This document shows positions 1,987 to 14,411 of a DNA stretch of 64,000 nucleotides, one piece after another (position 1 is the first letter of the stretch; the number at the start of each line of letters is the position of its first letter). The DNA is taken from the sequence record LC819006.1; one strand, written 5' to 3'. The notes under the pieces were generated by a model. The model did not search any database and was not told where the DNA came from. It was given only the letters and a program-made list of their open reading frames with translations. Both the position numbers and the translations under genes were made by a program.

Positions 1987-3510
1987 ATGACCCCAAGACT
2001 TCTTCTTCTCAAGATCATCACGCTCCTGCACCTCGAATCACAGATCGAAGGTGAGAATGCACGATCGTCTGACTTGGCTACCAGCCTGCTCGCCACCGTC
2101 AAAATTCCTGAGGCCGACGTGGGCCTCATAGACAGTGAACGAGAGATTATTGGCTCGCTCTACAACATATGTCGCAAACTCGCCACCGCTACGCCGGGCG
2201 ACGAGATGGACAAATCAGACCTCCTTCAGGAAGTCCGGTTGCATTGCGGCAGTGAAATCGATCTGTTCGAATCCTTCAAAGAAGGGATCGCGATTGAACT
2301 ATCACAAGATGGTCTCAAAAAGCGTGTTGGCTTCATCCGTAAAGAGCTCAAATCGTATCTACATTACGAGGGTACGAAAAAGCGCATCATGGATGCTGCC
2401 CATGCACTGCGTTTCAAGGAGAATTCGATTGAAGATATGGACAAGTATCTTCGCGACTTCTCAACTGACATTGAATCATCGCTCAGTAAATCCAGCAAGC
2501 AGGACGAAGCTATTCTCGGCACAATCGACATGGCAGATAAAGAGTCGGTTGTGAAAGCTGCATGTTCCGTGTCAGATGAGCAATCGGGTGCCGGTAAGCT
2601 CAAGACGCATTTGCAAGATCTGAATGACATGATGAATGGCGGCATGCGCCGCGGTGAATTCGTCTGTACTTCGGCTCTTCCGCACAACAACAAGACCGGC
2701 TTTTCGTTGGACATCTTCGCTGGTGTCGCAATCAACAACGATCCGTATCTGATTGATCCGAAGAAGAAGCCTTTGCTTCTGCGCATCTCGTTCGAAGATG
2801 ACGTCGAAATGAACTTCAACCACCTCTACAAGCACTTCTGGGAACAGGAGCATGGCGAGGTGGCAGTGATGGTCGGTAAATCCGAAGAGGAAATCGCCCA
2901 GTACGTCATGGACAAGATGACGGCACGTGGCTGGCATGTTCGCATGTACAAGGTCGATCCTTCGATGTGGTCGATCTTCGATCTGTTTGCATTCGTGCGT
3001 GATCTGGAATCGCAGGGTTATGAAATTGCTCTGTGTATGCTGGACTACATGCGTAAGATGCCGACTACGGGTTGCGTACAGGGCATTGCAGGCGCTGACG
3101 TCAGAGACATGGCTCGTCGTTGCCGTAACTTCTTCAATGCCCGTAAAACGGCGTTTTACACGCCGCACCAGATCTCGACTCAGGCTAAGGAAATCCAACG
3201 TTCGGTGCCTAAGGACTTTGTCAAGATGCTGCCGGGTGGCGGTTACTACGACGGCTGTAAATCGCTGGATGCAGAAATCGATCTGGAAATCTTCCAGCAT
3301 ATCGAGAAGCACAATGGTCATTCGTATCTGACCTTGCAGCGAGGCAAGCATCGTAATGCTCCGGTGCTGGCAGAAGAACTGAAGTATCTGGTTTACCAAT
3401 TCTACGACATCGGCGGCATTCCTCCTGACATTGGCGGAGAGCGTTCCGGTTTGCGTAAGGTTGGTGGCAAGCGTGCTTCGGAAGCTGAAACCGATTTCGA
3501 TTGGCTGTAA
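1987..3510 (+). CDS. dnaB: DnaB-like replicative helicase (phiKZ gp118-like)
   Basis: GGMRRGEF followed by degenerate Walker A ALPHNNKTG, Walker B MLDY, HQIS motif and C-terminal QRGKHR. Confidence 0.9.
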   Translation: MTPRLLLLKIITLLHLESQIEGENARSSDLATSLLATVKIPEADVGLIDSEREIIGSLYNICRKLATATPGDEMDKSDLLQEVRLHCGSEIDLFESFKEGIAIELSQDGLKKRVGFIRKELKSYLHYEGTKKRIMDAAHALRFKENSIEDMDKYLRDFSTDIESSLSKSSKQDEAILGTIDMADKESVVKAACSVSDEQSGAGKLKTHLQDLNDMMNGGMRRGEFVCTSALPHNNKTGFSLDIFAGVAINNDPYLIDPKKKPLLLRISFEDDVEMNFNHLYKHFWEQEHGEVAVMVGKSEEEIAQYVMDKMTARGWHVRMYKVDPSMWSIFDLFAFVRDLESQGYEIALCMLDYMRKMPTTGCVQGIAGADVRDMARRCRNFFNARKTAFYTPHQISTQAKEIQRSVPKDFVKMLPGGGYYDGCKSLDAEIDLEIFQHIEKHNGHSYLTLQRGKHRNAPVLAEELKYLVYQFYDIGGIPPDIGGERSGLRKVGGKRASEAETDFDWL

Positions 3511-4144: not shown

Positions 4145-4996
4145 TTAGTTCAAATGGGTTTCCCAGTAATCGGGATAGTCGCTGGGATGATTGATCATTT
4201 CAGCAGCAAGCTCCTTGATCGCACGCATACTGACCGAACCCAATCGATCCCAGTTATGATCCAGCCAATGCAACAGTTCCTGCTTTTGCGCCTTCGTCAG
4301 ATCGAAGATCTTGTTCTTCATTGTCACTGATGCAGTCCAGCCCCAGCTGACATCGCGATCGTACTTGAATTCCGTGTAAACAACGCGATCGCGTATTGCT
4401 GATTCGTCGATCTTGCGGGCACCCTTAGGAGCCGGATTGGACGGAGCAAGAGACTGGTTGCTGGTGATAATGAAGTTAATGTTGTCGGTCGGAATCTGGA
4501 TACCAACACCGTCCGCCGTCTGGAAAGCGCGCAGTGCTTCTGCAACGCGTTGCTCGTGGACCGATTCGCTCTTTTCATAAAGCTGAATCATCGCCGTCAT
4601 GTTCTTGTTCCATGCGAACATATTGCGATCTTCATCTAGAGCACCCTTCATGACCGACAGACTGGTACGATCAGCAAAAACCGAATCACAGTCATCGATC
4701 CAAACGTAGGTTTTCTTCCCACGAGAATTATGAACAGCCAAAGCTAGAGCGATAGCGATGGCATTCATGCTGGCCACGCCGATGATTTCGATCAGAGGAA
4801 TACGATGTTTCTTTGCCGTGTTCCGAACAGTCACGGACTTACCGATACCTGCGGGACCGACGATGTAGTGGTGTCGTTTCGGAACGATAAGGGCATCCGA
4901 CTTGTCGAAAGCCGCTGTGACTTTACCAACGAGTTGATTGGTCAGGATTTCGCCGCGCTCGATGTTTTGTTTTTGTTTGAGGGTAAACGGTTGCAT
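4145..4996 (-). CDS. AAA+ family ATPase
   Basis: Walker A GPAGIGKS, Walker B VWIDDCD, sensor-1 ITSN, putative Arg finger AIRDR. Confidence 0.85.
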   Translation of the reverse strand: MQPFTLKQKQNIERGEILTNQLVGKVTAAFDKSDALIVPKRHHYIVGPAGIGKSVTVRNTAKKHRIPLIEIIGVASMNAIAIALALAVHNSRGKKTYVWIDDCDSVFADRTSLSVMKGALDEDRNMFAWNKNMTAMIQLYEKSESVHEQRVAEALRAFQTADGVGIQIPTDNINFIITSNQSLAPSNPAPKGARKIDESAIRDRVVYTEFKYDRDVSWGWTASVTMKNKIFDLTKAQKQELLHWLDHNWDRLGSVSMRAIKELAAEMINHPSDYPDYWETHLN

Positions 4997-6980: not shown

Positions 6981-7301
6981 TTATGCTGCGATTTTAAAAT
7001 TGCAAATACGGTCGATCTCCAGCCTTGTCCGCAAACGCAGACGCGACTCCTTATGCAGGCGTACGTGATTGATGGAGAAGATACGACGTTCAACCTTGTA
7101 TCCCTCCGGAGTCACGAAACGACTCTTCAGGTAACCCCGTTTTTCAAGAAGCTCCAACGCCTCCATCAGACCGTCAGCAGACAACTTACCTTCTGCATCA
7201 CGGACAATATCGGACGAAGTCTTCTCGACCCCATAAGGCGCTTTAAGAAGATCAAGAATCTGTTCTTCCAGCGCTGTTAGTTTTTGTTGGTCCAGTTCCA
7301 T
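6981..7301 (-). CDS. Winged-helix-like protein (wH6, PadR/MarR-like pattern)
   Basis: LEEQILDLLK...GLMEALELLEKRGYLKSR...RRIFSI. Confidence 0.68.
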   Translation of the reverse strand: MELDQQKLTALEEQILDLLKAPYGVEKTSSDIVRDAEGKLSADGLMEALELLEKRGYLKSRFVTPEGYKVERRIFSINHVRLHKESRLRLRTRLEIDRICNFKIAA

Positions 7302-7768: not shown

Positions 7769-7855
7769 TTTCAAACCTCCTCAACGGAAAAAATGCGACC
7801 GAACCCCGAAGGATCCAGTCGCCCAACTTACCGGGCTGAGGCTCCCGGTAATCCT

Positions 7856-9491: not shown

Positions 9492-9521
9492 ATAGACAGA
9501 TGCCCGAAGGCATCTGTCTAT
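9492..9521 (-). terminator. Hairpin, copy 2 of the identical 26-bp core
   Basis: ATAGACAGATGCC-CGAA-GGCATCTGTCTAT. Confidence 0.7.
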
Positions 9522-9534
9522 TCACGCTTCGACG

Positions 9535-10749
9535 TTAGTCGTTGGATTGCGGCTTGGTACGCTTTACTGCAGGCTTCTTGATCGGCGTTTTCTTCACCGG
9601 CACCGAAGCTTTCGACGGTTTCTTAGCCGCCGTGGTCGTGGCGGTTGCGCCGCCTTCACCCAGGAGCGCTACCTTGAAGCCGAACTTCTCGGCAAATGCC
9701 GCGGCTTGCTTCTGGGTAAGCTTCGACGTCATCGTCGGGTTCTTCAGACCGACCCCAGCAGCCATGCGGATCACCAGAGCGTGCTCGATGATGCCCATGC
9801 TGCGAACCAGCTGGTCGAGCTTGATGGTCTTCGGGATCTCGATGGTCGGCTGTTTACGACGAGCGCCTGCCAGACGATCGATTGCCTTCTGGAGTTCCGA
9901 GCCTTCCGGAAGCGGAGACTTTTTACCGAACATCATGCCTGACAGATCCAGCTTCGAGACCGGAGTCACACCTCCTGAGCTTGCTGCCGTAGATGCGACG
10001 GGTCCCGACATGATCGCCATACCGGCGCCAGAAGACGTCGAGAGATCCGTACCACCTTGGGTCTGTCCAGCTTCTGCGAAGCCCGCCTGAGCCGTTTTAA
10101 GGCCCTCTGCGAACGTTCCTTGCTGGCCTTCCGTCAAGATCTTCGTATCCTTGAAGATCACGACGACGACATTGCCGATCGGACCGAGTTCCATGTACTG
10201 GATACGGTCGACCTGATCCGGATTTTCGTTGGCAGTGCCTTCGTAAACGCGGATGATTTCCTTTTGCTTCGTGTCGTAACCGACCCACACGGTGCTGCTG
10301 GAAACCTTGTGCAGGCCATCGGTCTGCGAAGCCTTCGGATCCGGATCGCGTTCGGTGACGTCATGCTCGACAACGAGACGACGCTTCCAGTACGAGATCG
10401 GTACTTCGACCGGCGTGTTGCTGCCGTCTTCCGGTTCTTGCTGAACCGAACGGATGGTCGGCGGGAAAGCTTCGTTGACCATCTTGCCATTGATGAGCTC
10501 GAACATCATGGCGTAATGCTGTTCCTGCGCCGAGCGAGCCTGACCGTGGAAGATCGGCGGTTCGTTCGTGTTGAAGCCGATGGTGTACTGCAGATACGGC
10601 ATCGACTGATTTTCATCGTGGCCGACGGTCGTCGTGAGCTTCAGGTTCTGGCGAAGACACGCGAGCGACAGTTGCTGCTGCATCGACAGAATGGTTGCGA
10701 TACGTGCCGCGGCTTCCGGATTGGAAATGTTTTTGTTCAGGCTTTTCAA
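9535..10749 (-). CDS. Protein with a C-terminal IF2 N-terminal-like domain and Lys/Pro/Ala tail
   Basis: IEIPKTIKLDQLVRSMG...TSKLTQKQAAAFAEKFGFKVAL aligns by eye to the bacterial IF2_N pattern. TTG start with GAGGAG SD. Confidence 0.65.
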   Translation of the reverse strand: MKSLNKNISNPEAAARIATILSMQQQLSLACLRQNLKLTTTVGHDENQSMPYLQYTIGFNTNEPPIFHGQARSAQEQHYAMMFELINGKMVNEAFPPTIRSVQQEPEDGSNTPVEVPISYWKRRLVVEHDVTERDPDPKASQTDGLHKVSSSTVWVGYDTKQKEIIRVYEGTANENPDQVDRIQYMELGPIGNVVVVIFKDTKILTEGQQGTFAEGLKTAQAGFAEAGQTQGGTDLSTSSGAGMAIMSGPVASTAASSGGVTPVSKLDLSGMMFGKKSPLPEGSELQKAIDRLAGARRKQPTIEIPKTIKLDQLVRSMGIIEHALVIRMAAGVGLKNPTMTSKLTQKQAAAFAEKFGFKVALLGEGGATATTTAAKKPSKASVPVKKTPIKKPAVKRTKPQSND

Positions 10750-10759
10750 AGCGAGCTCC

Positions 10760-11095
10760 TCAGTTTTGATAGGACAGGTCCGTCAGGCGAACGTATTTTT
10801 CGATGAACTGTTCGTCGTTCAGGATCTGGGTGACATCATCGGAAACGACAATCCAATCGCCCTTCTTGCACAGGACGACTTGTTCGTCGATTTCGAATTC
10901 GAGTTCGTCGACCGGGCGTCCGATCAACGACGTGATTTTGCGGCGGGCGAGATGTTTGCAAAAGAGGAAGGGGATCTCATCCGCATAGCCACGGTAACGG
11001 AAGGCGTAAACCTTCTGGACCGTTTTGGGGACGAAAGCGTATTTCAGCATTTCGTCCTCTTCTTTCGTTGCCAAACGTCTTTCTTGAGACATCAT
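10760..11095 (-). CDS. Hypothetical phage protein
   Basis: GDWIV...EQFIEKY pattern common in phage small proteins. ATGA overlap with the upstream gene. Confidence 0.65.
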   Translation of the reverse strand: MMSQERRLATKEEDEMLKYAFVPKTVQKVYAFRYRGYADEIPFLFCKHLARRKITSLIGRPVDELEFEIDEQVVLCKKGDWIVVSDDVTQILNDEQFIEKYVRLTDLSYQN

Positions 11096-11325
11096 TCTCC
11101 CTTCAGGGGCGGAACGGTTTGATATTTGGCCAGATCGTGCACATACGTGAGGATCTGGTCATTGAGACCGTGCAAGTAGTACATCAGAAAGACTGTACAG
11201 ACGAGCACGACTAGACCAACGGCGCTGATGCGCTTGCGAAAATAAAGCTCGTTGCAAAACAGAACGAGACTGCTCAGCAACAAGAACCCGAGTGCGATGA
11301 TGGCGAAGACTGCTTGCATTTTCAA
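11092..11325 (-). CDS. Small membrane protein (two TM segments)
   Basis: Two hydrophobic stretches. First gene after the early promoter at 11391. Confidence 0.65.
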   Translation of the reverse strand: MKMQAVFAIIALGFLLLSSLVLFCNELYFRKRISAVGLVVLVCTVFLMYYLHGLNDQILTYVHDLAKYQTVPPLKGE

Positions 11326-11390
11326 CTTCCTTTCTAATAATCAACATATCAGGCCGTTCAATTGCTTTTTACATGCGGATTCTCAGGGTA

Positions 11391-11407
11391 GTAATATATC
11401 TCCGAAA
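11391..11407 (-). promoter_or_regulatory. Early promoter TTTCGGA-GATATATTAC
   Basis: Intergenic, downstream of a terminator hairpin. Confidence 0.75.
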
Positions 11408-11453
11408 TAAAGTATAGCACATAAACACACAGGGAGCCGAAGCCCCCTGCATG

Positions 11454-12461
11454 TCAGAACAGATCTTCAGAGAACAACGGCGTGACGCTAATCAGGTAAC
11501 CTCGCTCATCCATATCACGCTCACGCCAGATGCCTCCCATTTTGGGATCTTCCTGGTTAAAGAGTTTGGATGCGCAACGAGTCAGCATCACGGACATCGT
11601 AGGCGTATCGACGATCATCTTGTTATCAACCGCCATGAGCATTGCCCGATACCGTGTAACGAAATTGCCGTGATTCGTAAGAAAACCCTGGACTTCGTTT
11701 CGCTGCAGCCCACCGTGTGCTTCCTGGTATTCCCGGGACTGCAGGATGTGGTGATGACGATGCGGACGATCGACGTACCACACCACACCATCAACCCAAT
11801 TCGCAGCCGCTACCGGATATTCGTTCTCGTGGTCAATCGTGGCTTCCACGGCACGAAGGATCGGAGTACCAAAGTCTTTCAGCAGACGGAAGTTCGTCTG
11901 GCTAAAGATTGCATTACGCAGCTTGTACAGCTGAGTAACATCTTCATCATTCTCGTCATAACGAATGATGGTCATCTGCATCGATGACTCCACGATATGC
12001 GAACACATCGTGCCTTCAGTCTTCTGCCACTTGCGAGGGCCGGTCAAGATCGCAATGATCGGTTGTTCGACTTTCCAGAACACGCAGATGTACAGGATGT
12101 CGTATCCGAACAGTTCGCTGTTGACGATATCCGAATACGGAGTACCATCCATTAGCACGAAGTCACGACCTTTCTTCTCCGGGTTCTGTCGCATGAACTG
12201 CTCGGCGACCAAGATCGCTCGCATGCACAGCGATTCAGTTGTCTGAGGGTTCATGTCGTAAACCGGCTGAGTCAAACCACCCAGTCGGTAAACGTGCTTG
12301 CATCCCTTCACGAAACGATAGAGTAGATCGTTGATCTTCGGACCCAGACCAATCGCACCGCTAGGGTTCGCTCCCCAGTGACCGGAGAACTGCGCCGGAT
12401 AGCGGAAGTTAGTCTTCTTTACCAGCCCGCTCAGGAACTTTTCCGAGTTGTTTTGCGACAT
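11454..12461 (-). CDS. Hypothetical protein with C-terminal RHHH...QGFLT..G.FVTR phage domain
   Basis: Open frame extends to 12545. ATG 12461 has a GGAG SD. Confidence 0.6.
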   Translation of the reverse strand: MSQNNSEKFLSGLVKKTNFRYPAQFSGHWGANPSGAIGLGPKINDLLYRFVKGCKHVYRLGGLTQPVYDMNPQTTESLCMRAILVAEQFMRQNPEKKGRDFVLMDGTPYSDIVNSELFGYDILYICVFWKVEQPIIAILTGPRKWQKTEGTMCSHIVESSMQMTIIRYDENDEDVTQLYKLRNAIFSQTNFRLLKDFGTPILRAVEATIDHENEYPVAAANWVDGVVWYVDRPHRHHHILQSREYQEAHGGLQRNEVQGFLTNHGNFVTRYRAMLMAVDNKMIVDTPTMSVMLTRCASKLFNQEDPKMGGIWRERDMDERGYLISVTPLFSEDLF

Positions 12462-12897
12462 GAGGGGTATGCTCCCTAGAGAGTGCCTTGCACCACGCTG
12501 GGTAACCGGCAAGCGGAAAAGGCTCGATGTCTCTTCCTGGTTCATTTTCCATCGCCAACAGAAACTCCTGGCGATTCTTCGGTTCGTTCGGGTTGTACGG
12601 AATCAGGCCCAGACGTATCACCATATCGTGAACGAAGTCCACGAATTCCGGATCAGGCCAGCCCGTTTCACGAGCGACATCCATGATGAGATTCTGACGC
12701 CACTTCCAGCCCATGAGGTAGGCCATGGCGTAGAAGTTCTCGACCTGAGGCTGGTTGTCGTCTTCTTCGACGACTGCTCCACCATTGAAACGAACCGCCG
12801 CACAACAGAGGTTCGCTAGCTCATGGATGAAGCGTTGCTTGACTTCTTCCGACAACGGCGGATTGAAGGTATTGACTGTGGCTTCTTTGTAGAACAC
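12409..12897 (-). CDS. Hypothetical protein
   Basis: GTG start with GAGG SD. Confidence 0.6.
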   Translation of the reverse strand: MFYKEATVNTFNPPLSEEVKQRFIHELANLCCAAVRFNGGAVVEEDDNQPQVENFYAMAYLMGWKWRQNLIMDVARETGWPDPEFVDFVHDMVIRLGLIPYNPNEPKNRQEFLLAMENEPGRDIEPFPLAGYPAWCKALSREHTPHVAKQLGKVPERAGKED

Positions 12898-12927
12898 GGT
12901 TCGCCTCTCAAATGAAGCAAAAAAAAA

Positions 12928-12952
12928 TGGTGAGAGGATTTCCCTCTCACCA
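12928..12952 (-). terminator. Hairpin plus U-tract after the NUDIX gene
   Basis: TGGTGAGAGG...CCTCTCACCA with A-run to the left. Confidence 0.7.
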
Positions 12953-12968
12953 CCAACGCGCTTCTCGC

Positions 12969-14411
12969 TTAAGCGCGGAGGAAAGCGTTCATCGCGTAGA
13001 ACTTCAGCGACGGATCGAAGATCTGCGAGATCGTGCCGATCTTCCAGCGGTCTTCAGCCGGAATCTTGGCGATGAACTCGGGATCGCTCGGGTGCGAGCC
13101 GCCATTGGACATGGAGTCCATGACGAAGCGACTGCTGATGGCCGGACGGTGCGGATTGAGCGACAGCATTTCCAGCGTGCCGATGAGCGAATCGATGACC
13201 GAACGCGACCAGCATTCCAGCGGAGTCGGCAGGAGCGAATCGTCTTGCAGGTCTTCGAGCCACTTGAAACCGACGTCGTTGAGTTCTTCTTCGTTCGTCG
13301 AGAGCTCGTAGTCTTCCGGCACCTCGATGGCGATCATCATTGCCAGGTGTTGCTTTTCGACATCGCCCGAAGCGTAGTCGAGGAAGAACGTGGTGCGCTG
13401 ATGCAGCCATTGTTCCGGTGAGCACATTGCATCCTGGGCGCCTTGGGCGATCAGGTCGACGATGTCTTTCGTCTCGTACGTCTCGACGACCTGAACATTC
13501 TCCACGCCACGGCCGTAGACCCGCATCTGGATTTCTTCGCGCCCTTCGCGAATCACGTTGTTCATGATGCCGGTCCAGAAACCTTCGCACAGCAGACGAC
13601 CCGAGAACGTATTGATGAGTTCGCTGCCGCCCGGGAAGGCATGCTTCACGAGCTTCGATTGCGTCGACAGGAAATCGTGCGGGTTGATGTGACCACCCAC
13701 GCCGACCGAACAACCCAATGCCAGACGTTCTTCGCCGACGCCCTTACCGCGCTGATACACGAAGATGCGATAGCGCTTGCCGATCTTCTTGTAGAACACG
13801 ATGTACGGCAGCAGCTGGATGTAGCGGCTGTCGTTTTCGCACCAGCCGCGACGGATGAAGTTCAGGGCCCAGTAGACCGCTTCGTTCAGTTCGTTCGGAC
13901 GCACTTCTTCTTGCGGGACCATCGTCATCATGTCGATGAAGTCACGCGCGGCGATCGCCAGCACTTGTTCGACGGGTTTCTTCTGACCTTCGACCGAATC
14001 ACACAGATCGGTGTAGGTCGGCAGACGACCGAAGTCGTGTTCCTTCATCAGGTCGTGTTCGACCGTCGGCTTTTCGTCGACCATCAGCGGAATCTGACCC
14101 GGATAAAGCAGCGTGCCGAAAAGCGGAACCGGCGCAATGTCGTCCATGATCTGTTCGCCGAACTGGTTCTTGAACCCGAGCGACACTTGTCCGCCGATCG
14201 GCGTGATGACTGCGTTCTCGTCGTCGCGCATCTTCGCCGCGCGCTTGATGATCTCGGTGCTGACCGGCAGCAGCGGAATGTATGCACGCGCCGACAACGG
14301 AGGCGTTTGCGGATCGTCGATTTCGTCTTGTTGGTTTGCTGCGGGCGTGATCAGAACGCGAGTAGCCTGGTCAGCTGCTTCAGCTTGGTCGAATTTTTCT
14401 TGCAGAGACAT
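12969..14411 (-). CDS. NUDIX-superfamily protein (COG4112/YmaB-like) with N-terminal extension
   Basis: QLLPYIV...YQRGKGVGEERL...SVGVGGHIN...REGREE motifs. Confidence 0.75.
   Translation of the reverse strand: MSLQEKFDQAEAADQATRVLITPAANQQDEIDDPQTPPLSARAYIPLLPVSTEIIKRAAKMRDDENAVITPIGGQVSLGFKNQFGEQIMDDIAPVPLFGTLLYPGQIPLMVDEKPTVEHDLMKEHDFGRLPTYTDLCDSVEGQKKPVEQVLAIAARDFIDMMTMVPQEEVRPNELNEAVYWALNFIRRGWCENDSRYIQLLPYIVFYKKIGKRYRIFVYQRGKGVGEERLALGCSVGVGGHINPHDFLSTQSKLVKHAFPGGSELINTFSGRLLCEGFWTGIMNNVIREGREEIQMRVYGRGVENVQVVETYETKDIVDLIAQGAQDAMCSPEQWLHQRTTFFLDYASGDVEKQHLAMMIAIEVPEDYELSTNEEELNDVGFKWLEDLQDDSLLPTPLECWSRSVIDSLIGTLEMLSLNPHRPAISSRFVMDSMSNGGSHPSDPEFIAKIPAEDRWKIGTISQIFDPSLKFYAMNAFLRA

Follow-up and report, generated by a model that had tools for sequence, protein, structure and literature searches.

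A diverged IF2_N-type domain in gp139 of Chiangmaivirus jumbo phages and its possible docking on the 30S ribosomal subunit

In nucleus-forming jumbo phages, transcription and translation take place apart from each other, and the way in which phage messenger RNAs (mRNAs) engage the ribosomes of the host is an open question. So far, a single ribosome-binding protein of such phages has been structurally characterised, namely PhiKZ014, which is found on the 50S subunit. The question is raised again by a gene in a 64,000-nucleotide stretch of sequence record LC819006.1 (the window), where an intact open reading frame on the minus strand (9535..10749), beginning with TTG, encodes 404 residues followed by a stop codon. 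An original prediction, made from the sequence alone, had placed here a phage protein with a domain resembling the N-terminal region of translation initiation factor IF2, and had proposed that it docks on ribosomes or mimics IF2. The frame indeed exists and is, with identical bounds, gp139 of Burkholderia phage FLC8 (BDD79421.1), which is annotated as a hypothetical protein. Does gp139 carry such a domain, and what could the domain do in a phage protein? As detailed below, residues 297-365 very probably form a diverged IF2_N-type domain, and docking of this domain on the 30S subunit is put forward as a tentative reading.

The 2.5 kilobases (kb) around the frame share 100% DNA identity with FLC8 (LC667450) and Ralstonia phage FLC4-11C, 98% with FLC6, FLC4-4C and FLC4-5C, and ~84% with Ralstonia phage RSL2. 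Phages of the FLC8/RSL2 type are myoviruses of 223-228 kb that belong to the genus Chiangmaivirus, and their hosts are bacteria. Given that the related phage SURPRISE13 has genes for a PhuZ-like tubulin and a nuclear-shell protein (PMC11898562), the FLC-type phages are taken to replicate in a PhiKZ-like manner in a nucleus-like compartment. Because of this compartment, the phage mRNAs must meet the ribosomes outside it (PMC11898562).

Direct searches find no IF2_N-type domain in gp139. At an expectation value (E) of 10 or below, neither full-length gp139 nor its excised domain has a match in Pfam, so that the HMMER check against Pfam IF2_N (PF04760; gathering cutoff 25.3 bits) that had been suggested for this locus came out negative, and a phmmer search of PDB with the excised domain returns no match to IF2. 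NCBIfam, too, holds no match for gp139. The likeness to IF2 first seen by eye, about 17 identities in 60, agrees with the 27% identity over 63-75 columns obtained here, and as a pairwise sequence comparison it is insignificant on its own.

It is through the relatives of gp139 that the assignment can be made. A word-seeded search yields 14 members of the family and an exhaustive phmmer search 29, and Pfam recognises IF2_N in distant members that share the N-terminal domain of gp139: in three stretches of P0021 (E 3.4e-23, 81.6 bits), in two of P0020 (E 2.3e-15, 56.5 bits) and in P0022, at 25.7 bits against the cutoff of 25.3, with a further match in P0027 at E 0.028. The Pfam-positive domains of these distant relatives occur in one to three tandem copies at a position equivalent to that of the segment in gp139. 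Closer to the window, P0004, a clade member 64% identical to gp139, gives a sub-threshold IF2_N match (E 0.018, 15.2 bits) over exactly the homologous residues. Moreover, profiles join the two groups in both directions. A hidden Markov model (HMM) of the domain built from the window clade recovers precisely the Pfam-positive stretches of P0020 and P0021, and hhalign aligns the clade domain with the repeats of the relatives over 60 columns (probability 96.9%, E 1.6e-10). Conversely, when an HMM built from the repeats of the relatives only, with the clade excluded, is run over the 784 six-frame pieces of the window, the gp139 domain comes out on top (E 0.012, the next at 0.7). Within IF2, the region matched by P0020 and P0021 is the N2 sub-domain just ahead of the G domain: plain phmmer of P0021 reaches residues 304-364 of E. 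coli IF2 and 257-347 of P. aeruginosa IF2, where N2 scores 20.9 bits and the N1 region -3.1 bits, and both proteins match only positions 2-66 of the 587-position TIGR00487 model (IF-2 equivalog).

The predicted structure points to the same part of IF2. The AlphaFold2 model of gp139, built on a 37-sequence alignment, has a mean predicted local distance difference test (pLDDT) score of 80.5 and shows confidently predicted globules at residues 11-228 and ~300-365, separated by a disordered linker (234-275) and followed by a disordered tail (373-404). The second globule is the IF2_N-type domain (residues 297-365; 9655..9861, minus), which is modelled as beta-beta-alpha-alpha-beta-alpha-beta, carries a net charge of +7 at an isoelectric point (pI) of 10.4, and reaches a pLDDT of ~95 in the full model and of 75-85 when modelled alone. 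A Foldseek search with the full model returns first 7UIU, the N2 sub-domain of P. aeruginosa IF2 on the 30S subunit, and second IF2 in a 70S initiation complex. With the domain alone, the top four matches are all IF2 (7uiu at E 9.6e-4, probability 1.00, template modelling (TM) score 0.66-0.68, 75 columns with 27% identity). Two fragments of IF2 from T. thermophilus appear further down, and nothing else has an E below 1. The structural comparison called for earlier thus gives IF2 first, and judged from the predicted models the best match of the gp139 domain is the N2 sub-domain, not N1. Together with the Pfam matches of the relatives and the hhalign result, this bears out the IF2_N-like segment that had been seen at residues 303-363. 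We regard it as very probable, from profiles and predicted fold, that residues 297-365 are a diverged IF2_N-type domain; by the Pfam cutoff, the gp139 copy itself is not a formal member of IF2_N. By this, phrog_36087 (function unknown), a hypothetical protein of RSL2/RSF1-type phages which gp139 matches over the full length of its HMM (E 9.5e-206; all 387 profile positions aligned to residues 23-404), gets its first domain assignment.

The domain is embedded in an unrelated phage protein. The family-defining N-terminal domain (residues 1-228; 10066..10749, minus) is acidic (net -7, pI 5.3), has a pLDDT mostly above 90 for residues 11-228 and runs, in the model, from a long helix into three beta-beta-beta(-beta)-alpha units. 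What lies outside the IF2-like segment and the tail had been called unknown, and none of Pfam, NCBIfam and PDB gives a match to it; for the N-terminal domain, the only significant fold match in PDB and BFVD is the RSF1 orthologue, so that by its model it is apparently a new fold. Across the wide family, its near-invariant residues are only Gly, Pro, Trp, Asn and one Arg, and since no catalytic-type residues are conserved, the domain is more likely to be a binding or scaffold domain than an enzyme. The search with the full model also returned T7 gp1.2, a dGTPase inhibitor (probability 0.95, 76 columns, root-mean-square deviation 6 A), and many phage proteins of 80-140 residues in BFVD, none of which appear when the C-terminal domain is searched alone; these matches probably reflect the first modelled alpha-beta-beta-beta-alpha unit, probably residues 11-86.

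The two globules are joined by a disordered linker rich in Ser, Gly, Ala and Thr (residues 229-282; 9904..10065, minus; pLDDT below 50 at 234-275), ~50 residues whose length and sequence vary across the alignment. A short helix follows (residues 283-296; 9862..9903, minus; helical at 285-295 in the model), in which Arg292 and Leu293 are invariant in the window clade, and leads into the IF2_N-type domain. The latter opens just after the helix with a conserved basic patch, Arg-Arg-Lys (297-299), that precedes the first strand. At the end lies the Lys/Pro/Ala tail that had been noticed earlier, a disordered basic segment (residues 366-404; 9538..9654, minus) with K9 A6 T6 P5, a net charge of +9 and a pLDDT largely below 50 (at 373-394 and 396-399), which brings the net charge of the last 108 residues to +16. 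The terminal Gln-(Ser/Thr)-Asn-Asp (9538-9549) recurs in gp139, P0002-P0004, P0006 and P0009-P0011, even where the IF2-type domain is replaced, and may be a short docking or recognition motif.

Further candidates for parts of gp139 were rejected. The PASTA domains of PBP1 from S. aureus came up weakly in the PDB sequence search (E 0.026), but this match was not reproduced by fold search and was treated as chance, and a PHROG tape-measure match (E 0.0043) and a PDB profile match to an ejection protein (E 0.39) both lie within the low-complexity linker.

Comparison within the family indicates how the C-terminal half is put together. The N-terminal region (residues 1 to ~220) is the only part common to all 29 to 36 relatives, and the C-terminal halves differ. 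The metagenomic relatives P0017 and P0018 have other repeats and long Ala/Lys/Pro tails, with a Tyr-Tyr-Thr-Ala...Gly motif occurring twice in P0018, and the last 40 residues of P0017 are 90% K/R/P/A. On sequence comparison, the basic tail is the most widely shared part of the C-terminal half, and the IF2-type domain belongs to a set of modules that can stand in for one another. Among GenBank phages, the family is narrowly distributed: tblastn with gp139, P0018 and P0021 against 50,697 phage records found only 11 records, all Chiangmaivirus-type, and a region-restricted search for other proteins with the C-terminal module of gp139 gave close orthologues only.

What could an IF2 N2-like module do in such a protein? 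When P. aeruginosa IF2 is bound in the 70S initiation complex, its N2 globule lies against helix h16 of 16S ribosomal RNA (rRNA) at the shoulder of the 30S subunit, an extension from N2 wraps the minor groove of h16, and the main contacts are made by Arg259, Ser277, Val278 and Lys279 (PMC9192638). The N1 sub-domain of E. coli IF2, which is paralogous to N2, binds the transcription factor NusA (PMC12297416). As N2 binds h16 and N1 binds NusA, the IF2_N fold can be seen as a module for docking whose partners are of two kinds or more. Further, nine proteins of PhiKZ co-sediment with ribosomal subunits, and PhiKZ014 has been seen bound to 50S (PMC10914614). Two PhiKZ proteins that co-sediment with 30S still call for an explanation.

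Against this background, gp139 may be viewed as a modular tether, composed of an acidic N-terminal domain, a flexible linker and a basic C-terminal module for RNA docking. The C-terminal module would dock on structured RNA, most plausibly on h16 at the 30S shoulder where IF2 N2 sits, and the N-terminal domain, held by the linker, would then lie close to the mRNA entry side of the ribosome. From there, the N-terminal domain might bring ribosomes together with the transcripts or with a structure of the phage, or the protein might compete in part with the anchor of IF2. In favour of docking are the match to N2 and not N1, the basic character of the domain (+7) and of the tail (+9), and the conserved basic patch before the first strand. 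We put forward this tether with predicted RNA docking, most plausibly on 30S, as a tentative reading that falls somewhat short of an even chance, with ribosome binding inferred from sequence and model. The more specific idea is that a family of jumbo-phage proteins has captured IF2 N2, as a single copy or as two or three, and that the phages thereby station a domain of their own on h16, on the side where mRNA enters 30S. We consider this speculation unlikely as it stands; if true, it would constitute a new route by which nucleus-forming phages, which make their transcripts within a protein shell, seize host ribosomes or displace the IF2 anchor.

The likeness to IF2 N2 (PF04760; PDB 7UIU/7UNV) extends to a small fold of three helices and short strands, to profile-level homology through the relatives, and to an extension beside the globule, which in IF2 lies in the h16 minor groove. 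There are also differences: in gp139 no GTPase follows the domain, which stands at the C-terminal end of an unrelated phage protein, scores below the Pfam threshold and is strongly basic. Searches of NCBIfam and Pfam for the remainder of IF2 found no GTPase G domain and no C-terminal tRNA-binding domains in gp139, and the TIGR00487 equivalog model does not take it in. Since both the G domain and the tRNA-binding domain are missing, gp139 is, on its sequence, not an IF2 mimic in the full sense, and this part of the original prediction is not supported; nothing in the sequence speaks for the biasing or the blocking of initiation that had also been suggested. N1 (PMC12297416) is comparable to the gp139 module in that a flexible region ends in a docking unit of this repeated fold, but the matches of the gp139 family are to N2 and nothing points to NusA. 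PhiKZ014 and Churi gp335 (PMC10914614, PMC11849849) offer a possible parallel, being jumbo-phage proteins proposed to act on host ribosomes through charge-based contacts with rRNA, and PhiKZ014 also has a disordered C-terminal region. However, there is no sequence relationship, as tblastn found only the Chiangmaivirus-type phages, and PhiKZ014 has demonstrated binding to 5S rRNA on 50S whereas that of gp139 is predicted, and on 30S.

Several observations weigh against docking on h16. In the transitive alignment to IF2, Val278 corresponds to Ile320, which is kept in kind, and Ser277 to Gly319, but Lys279 falls on Ile321, where no member of the clade has Lys or Arg; Arg259 falls beside the conserved basic patch, in a different column, by transitive alignment only. 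N1, of the same fold as N2, binds the protein NusA and not the ribosome. The domain is also replaced or absent in many members of the family: P0010 and P0011, both metagenomic, have an unrelated insert of ~130 residues where gp139 has the IF2-type domain, and when the 36 other family members were scanned, 18 showed no IF2_N-type copy. Most of the closer relatives, among them several without the domain, have kept a basic Lys/Ala/Pro tail, and as the tails outlast the domain in this way, generic binding of polyanions would be the more widely shared property. Finally, charge sets the gp139 copy, which is strongly basic, apart from the acidic canonical IF2_N repeats of the distant relatives (-2 to -7). 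The proposal of ribosome docking thus survives in part: homology to the IF2 repeat, N2 as the best match and the precedent of PhiKZ014 speak for it, and the unconserved h16 lysine, the frequent absence of the domain, the acidic repeats of the relatives and the binding of NusA by N1 speak against it.

The alternative that survives best is that gp139 is a general binder of nucleic acids, in which the basic domain and a tail like that of histone H1 coat DNA or RNA unspecifically, for example phage DNA or transcripts, and in which the IF2-type fold is merely a convenient small scaffold. Histone H1-like and AlgP-type tails are disordered, basic and rich in Lys, Ala and Pro, as is the tail of gp139. 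The latter differs from them in being short (39 residues), in lacking a regular repeat and in its conserved Gln-(Ser/Thr)-Asn-Asp end. The net charge of the C-terminal 108 residues, the basic Lys/Ala/Pro tails of relatives that have no IF2_N-type domain (P0017, P0018, P0010, P0011) and the freely varying middle modules of the family would all suit such a role. In contrast, the fold search with the domain returned no DNA-binding helix-turn-helix or nucleoid protein, the nearest being sIHF at E 5.7 and probability 0.07, and IF2 alone was significant; the tandem canonical repeats of the relatives, being acidic, fit charge-driven coating poorly; and the gp139 gene is not among the virion structural proteins given for FLC6. 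A general nucleic-acid binder is therefore a doubtful but serious possibility, and, if it were correct, the finding would shrink to a domain annotation.

A second alternative keeps the docking function and changes the partner, such that the IF2-type domain is a protein-protein adaptor which binds a host or phage protein, as N1 binds the KH2/AR1 region of NusA, and in this way connects the N-terminal domain with a complex for transcription or RNA processing. That N1 and N2 are repeats of one fold, of which N1 binds NusA directly (PMC12297416), and that the repeats of the relatives are acidic and in tandem, as would be expected of protein-binding modules, lend it some appeal. It sits badly with the sequence and fold matches, which are to N2 and not N1 (for P0021, N1 -3.1 bits versus N2 20.9 bits), with the match to TIGR00487 at its first positions (2-66), and with the strongly basic character of the gp139 copy and the basic tail behind it. 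We consider the adaptor distinctly improbable.

The likeness to IF2 might also have arisen by chance, the segment being merely a small helical domain, as the lack of any direct Pfam, NCBIfam or PDB sequence match for gp139 and a pairwise identity of only ~27% could suggest. Yet three independent lines (the Pfam matches of the relatives, hhalign and Foldseek) converge on the same 60-70 residues, P0004 matches IF2_N at the homologous place, and the clade-excluding HMM ranks the gp139 domain first in the window, which makes a chance likeness very hard to sustain.

The weakest alternative, that gp139 is an orthologue of ChmC (PhiPA3 gp61, PhiKZ gp67), the phage-nucleus-associated RNA-binding protein, with its N-terminal beta-beta-beta-alpha units as a Whirly-like fold, draws on the secondary-structure pattern of residues 36-228, which recalls the tandem beta-beta-beta-alpha description of ChmC, and on the disordered C-terminal region there too (PMC11077065), but is next to excluded by an empty BLASTP search, by fold searches of BFVD and PDB that return no ChmC or Whirly proteins, and by the presence in the FLC genomes of a separate, weak ChmC-like match outside the window. 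An hhalign comparison of the family with more than 100 homologues of PhiPA3 gp61 and PhiKZ gp67, in which the N-terminal domain was tried as ChmC, gave a probability of 0.1%. The two proteins are alike in having a globular N-terminal beta/alpha repeat domain, a disordered C-terminal region and the same phage lifestyle, but show no detectable homology, and the tail of ChmC is Asn/Gly-rich and acidic whereas that of gp139 is basic. The separate match, to PhiPA3 gp61 (E 9e-3, 27% identity over 65%), lies at 214434-214913 in FLC4-11C and 215832-216311 in FLC6, and this locus is, by sequence, a candidate ChmC of the Chiangmaivirus phages.

The finding matters beyond gp139 itself. A phage family with the sub-domain by which IF2 holds the 30S shoulder offers a concrete, structure-guided hypothesis for a phage factor directed at 30S. 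Moreover, it shows the IF2_N fold put to use elsewhere than in IF2, as a mobile module with a predicted docking role, and this touches on what a poorly understood domain does in bacteria. Our literature search found no publication that connects phage proteins with IF2_N-type domains, the one exception being a retroelement target, and the supplementary tables of the core-genome paper, in text form, do not include the gp139 gene.

The start of the gene also deserves comment. A GGAG ribosome-binding site at 10756-10759, within the region 10750..10759 (minus), stands 6 nucleotides ahead of the TTG start, and residues 1-22 are kept in relatives down to ~30% identity. The long form with the TTG start is therefore considered sound. 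RSL2 gp129 (NC_028950, 20001-21230) is annotated from an internal Met as a protein of 387 residues, and tblastn aligns it to gp139 from residue 1 (window 10684-10749); judged from this alignment, the annotated start is probably too short. The stop codon of the gene upstream (10760-10762) sits directly before the ribosome-binding region of gp139, by which the two genes would be closely linked in translation.

Beyond the stop codon of gp139, 14 nucleotides on, lies a perfect hairpin with a UUCG loop (9492..9521, minus), and a T-run follows another 13 nucleotides further. Its minimum free energy is -28.1 kcal/mol (z-score -5.8), and none of 200 shuffled sequences folds as well. The gene block thus ends in what is probably an element for transcript ends or RNA stability. 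Stable hairpins recur between minus-strand genes of the window, at 7795-7822, 9492-9521, 11431-11447 and 12926-12954, all on the minus strand and three of the four with UUCG-type loops. They are likely to be transcript-end or RNA-stability elements of the phage. A scan for sigma-70 promoters and terminators gave background level only, and the window holds no tRNA genes and no Rfam families.

With regard to its neighbourhood, gp139 is the last gene of a six-gene block, preceded on the minus strand by five genes (10760..14411) of unknown function: a gene for 480 residues (12969-14411), one for 162 (12409-12897), one for 335 (11454-12461), one for a small hydrophobic protein of 75 residues two genes before gp139 (11092-11319), and one for 111 residues (10760-11095) that adjoins gp139. 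The same order and homology are found in two diverged metagenomic jumbo-phage contigs, so that the block at 14411-9535 (minus) of the window corresponds to 4334-9902 of L002 and 3438-8252 of L003. The neighbours reach up to 48% identity, versus ~35% for the N-terminal domain of gp139, and the C-terminal half of gp139 cannot be aligned, which marks gp139 as the fast-evolving, modular and most variable member of the block. The five neighbours have no functional match in PHROGs or Pfam, and PDB sequence searches with them were empty; the protein of 75 residues has two hydrophobic stretches and is probably a small membrane protein.

Further downstream, a divergent DnaB-like helicase gene (1987-3510, plus; Pfam divDNAB, E 8e-112), the only plus-strand gene within that minus-strand stretch, and an AAA ATPase gene (4145-4996, minus) lie 5-7 kb from gp139. 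Finally, a protein of 106 residues (6981-7301, minus; phrog_38069) is kept in both metagenomic contigs at 45-47% identity, with a varying distance to the block.

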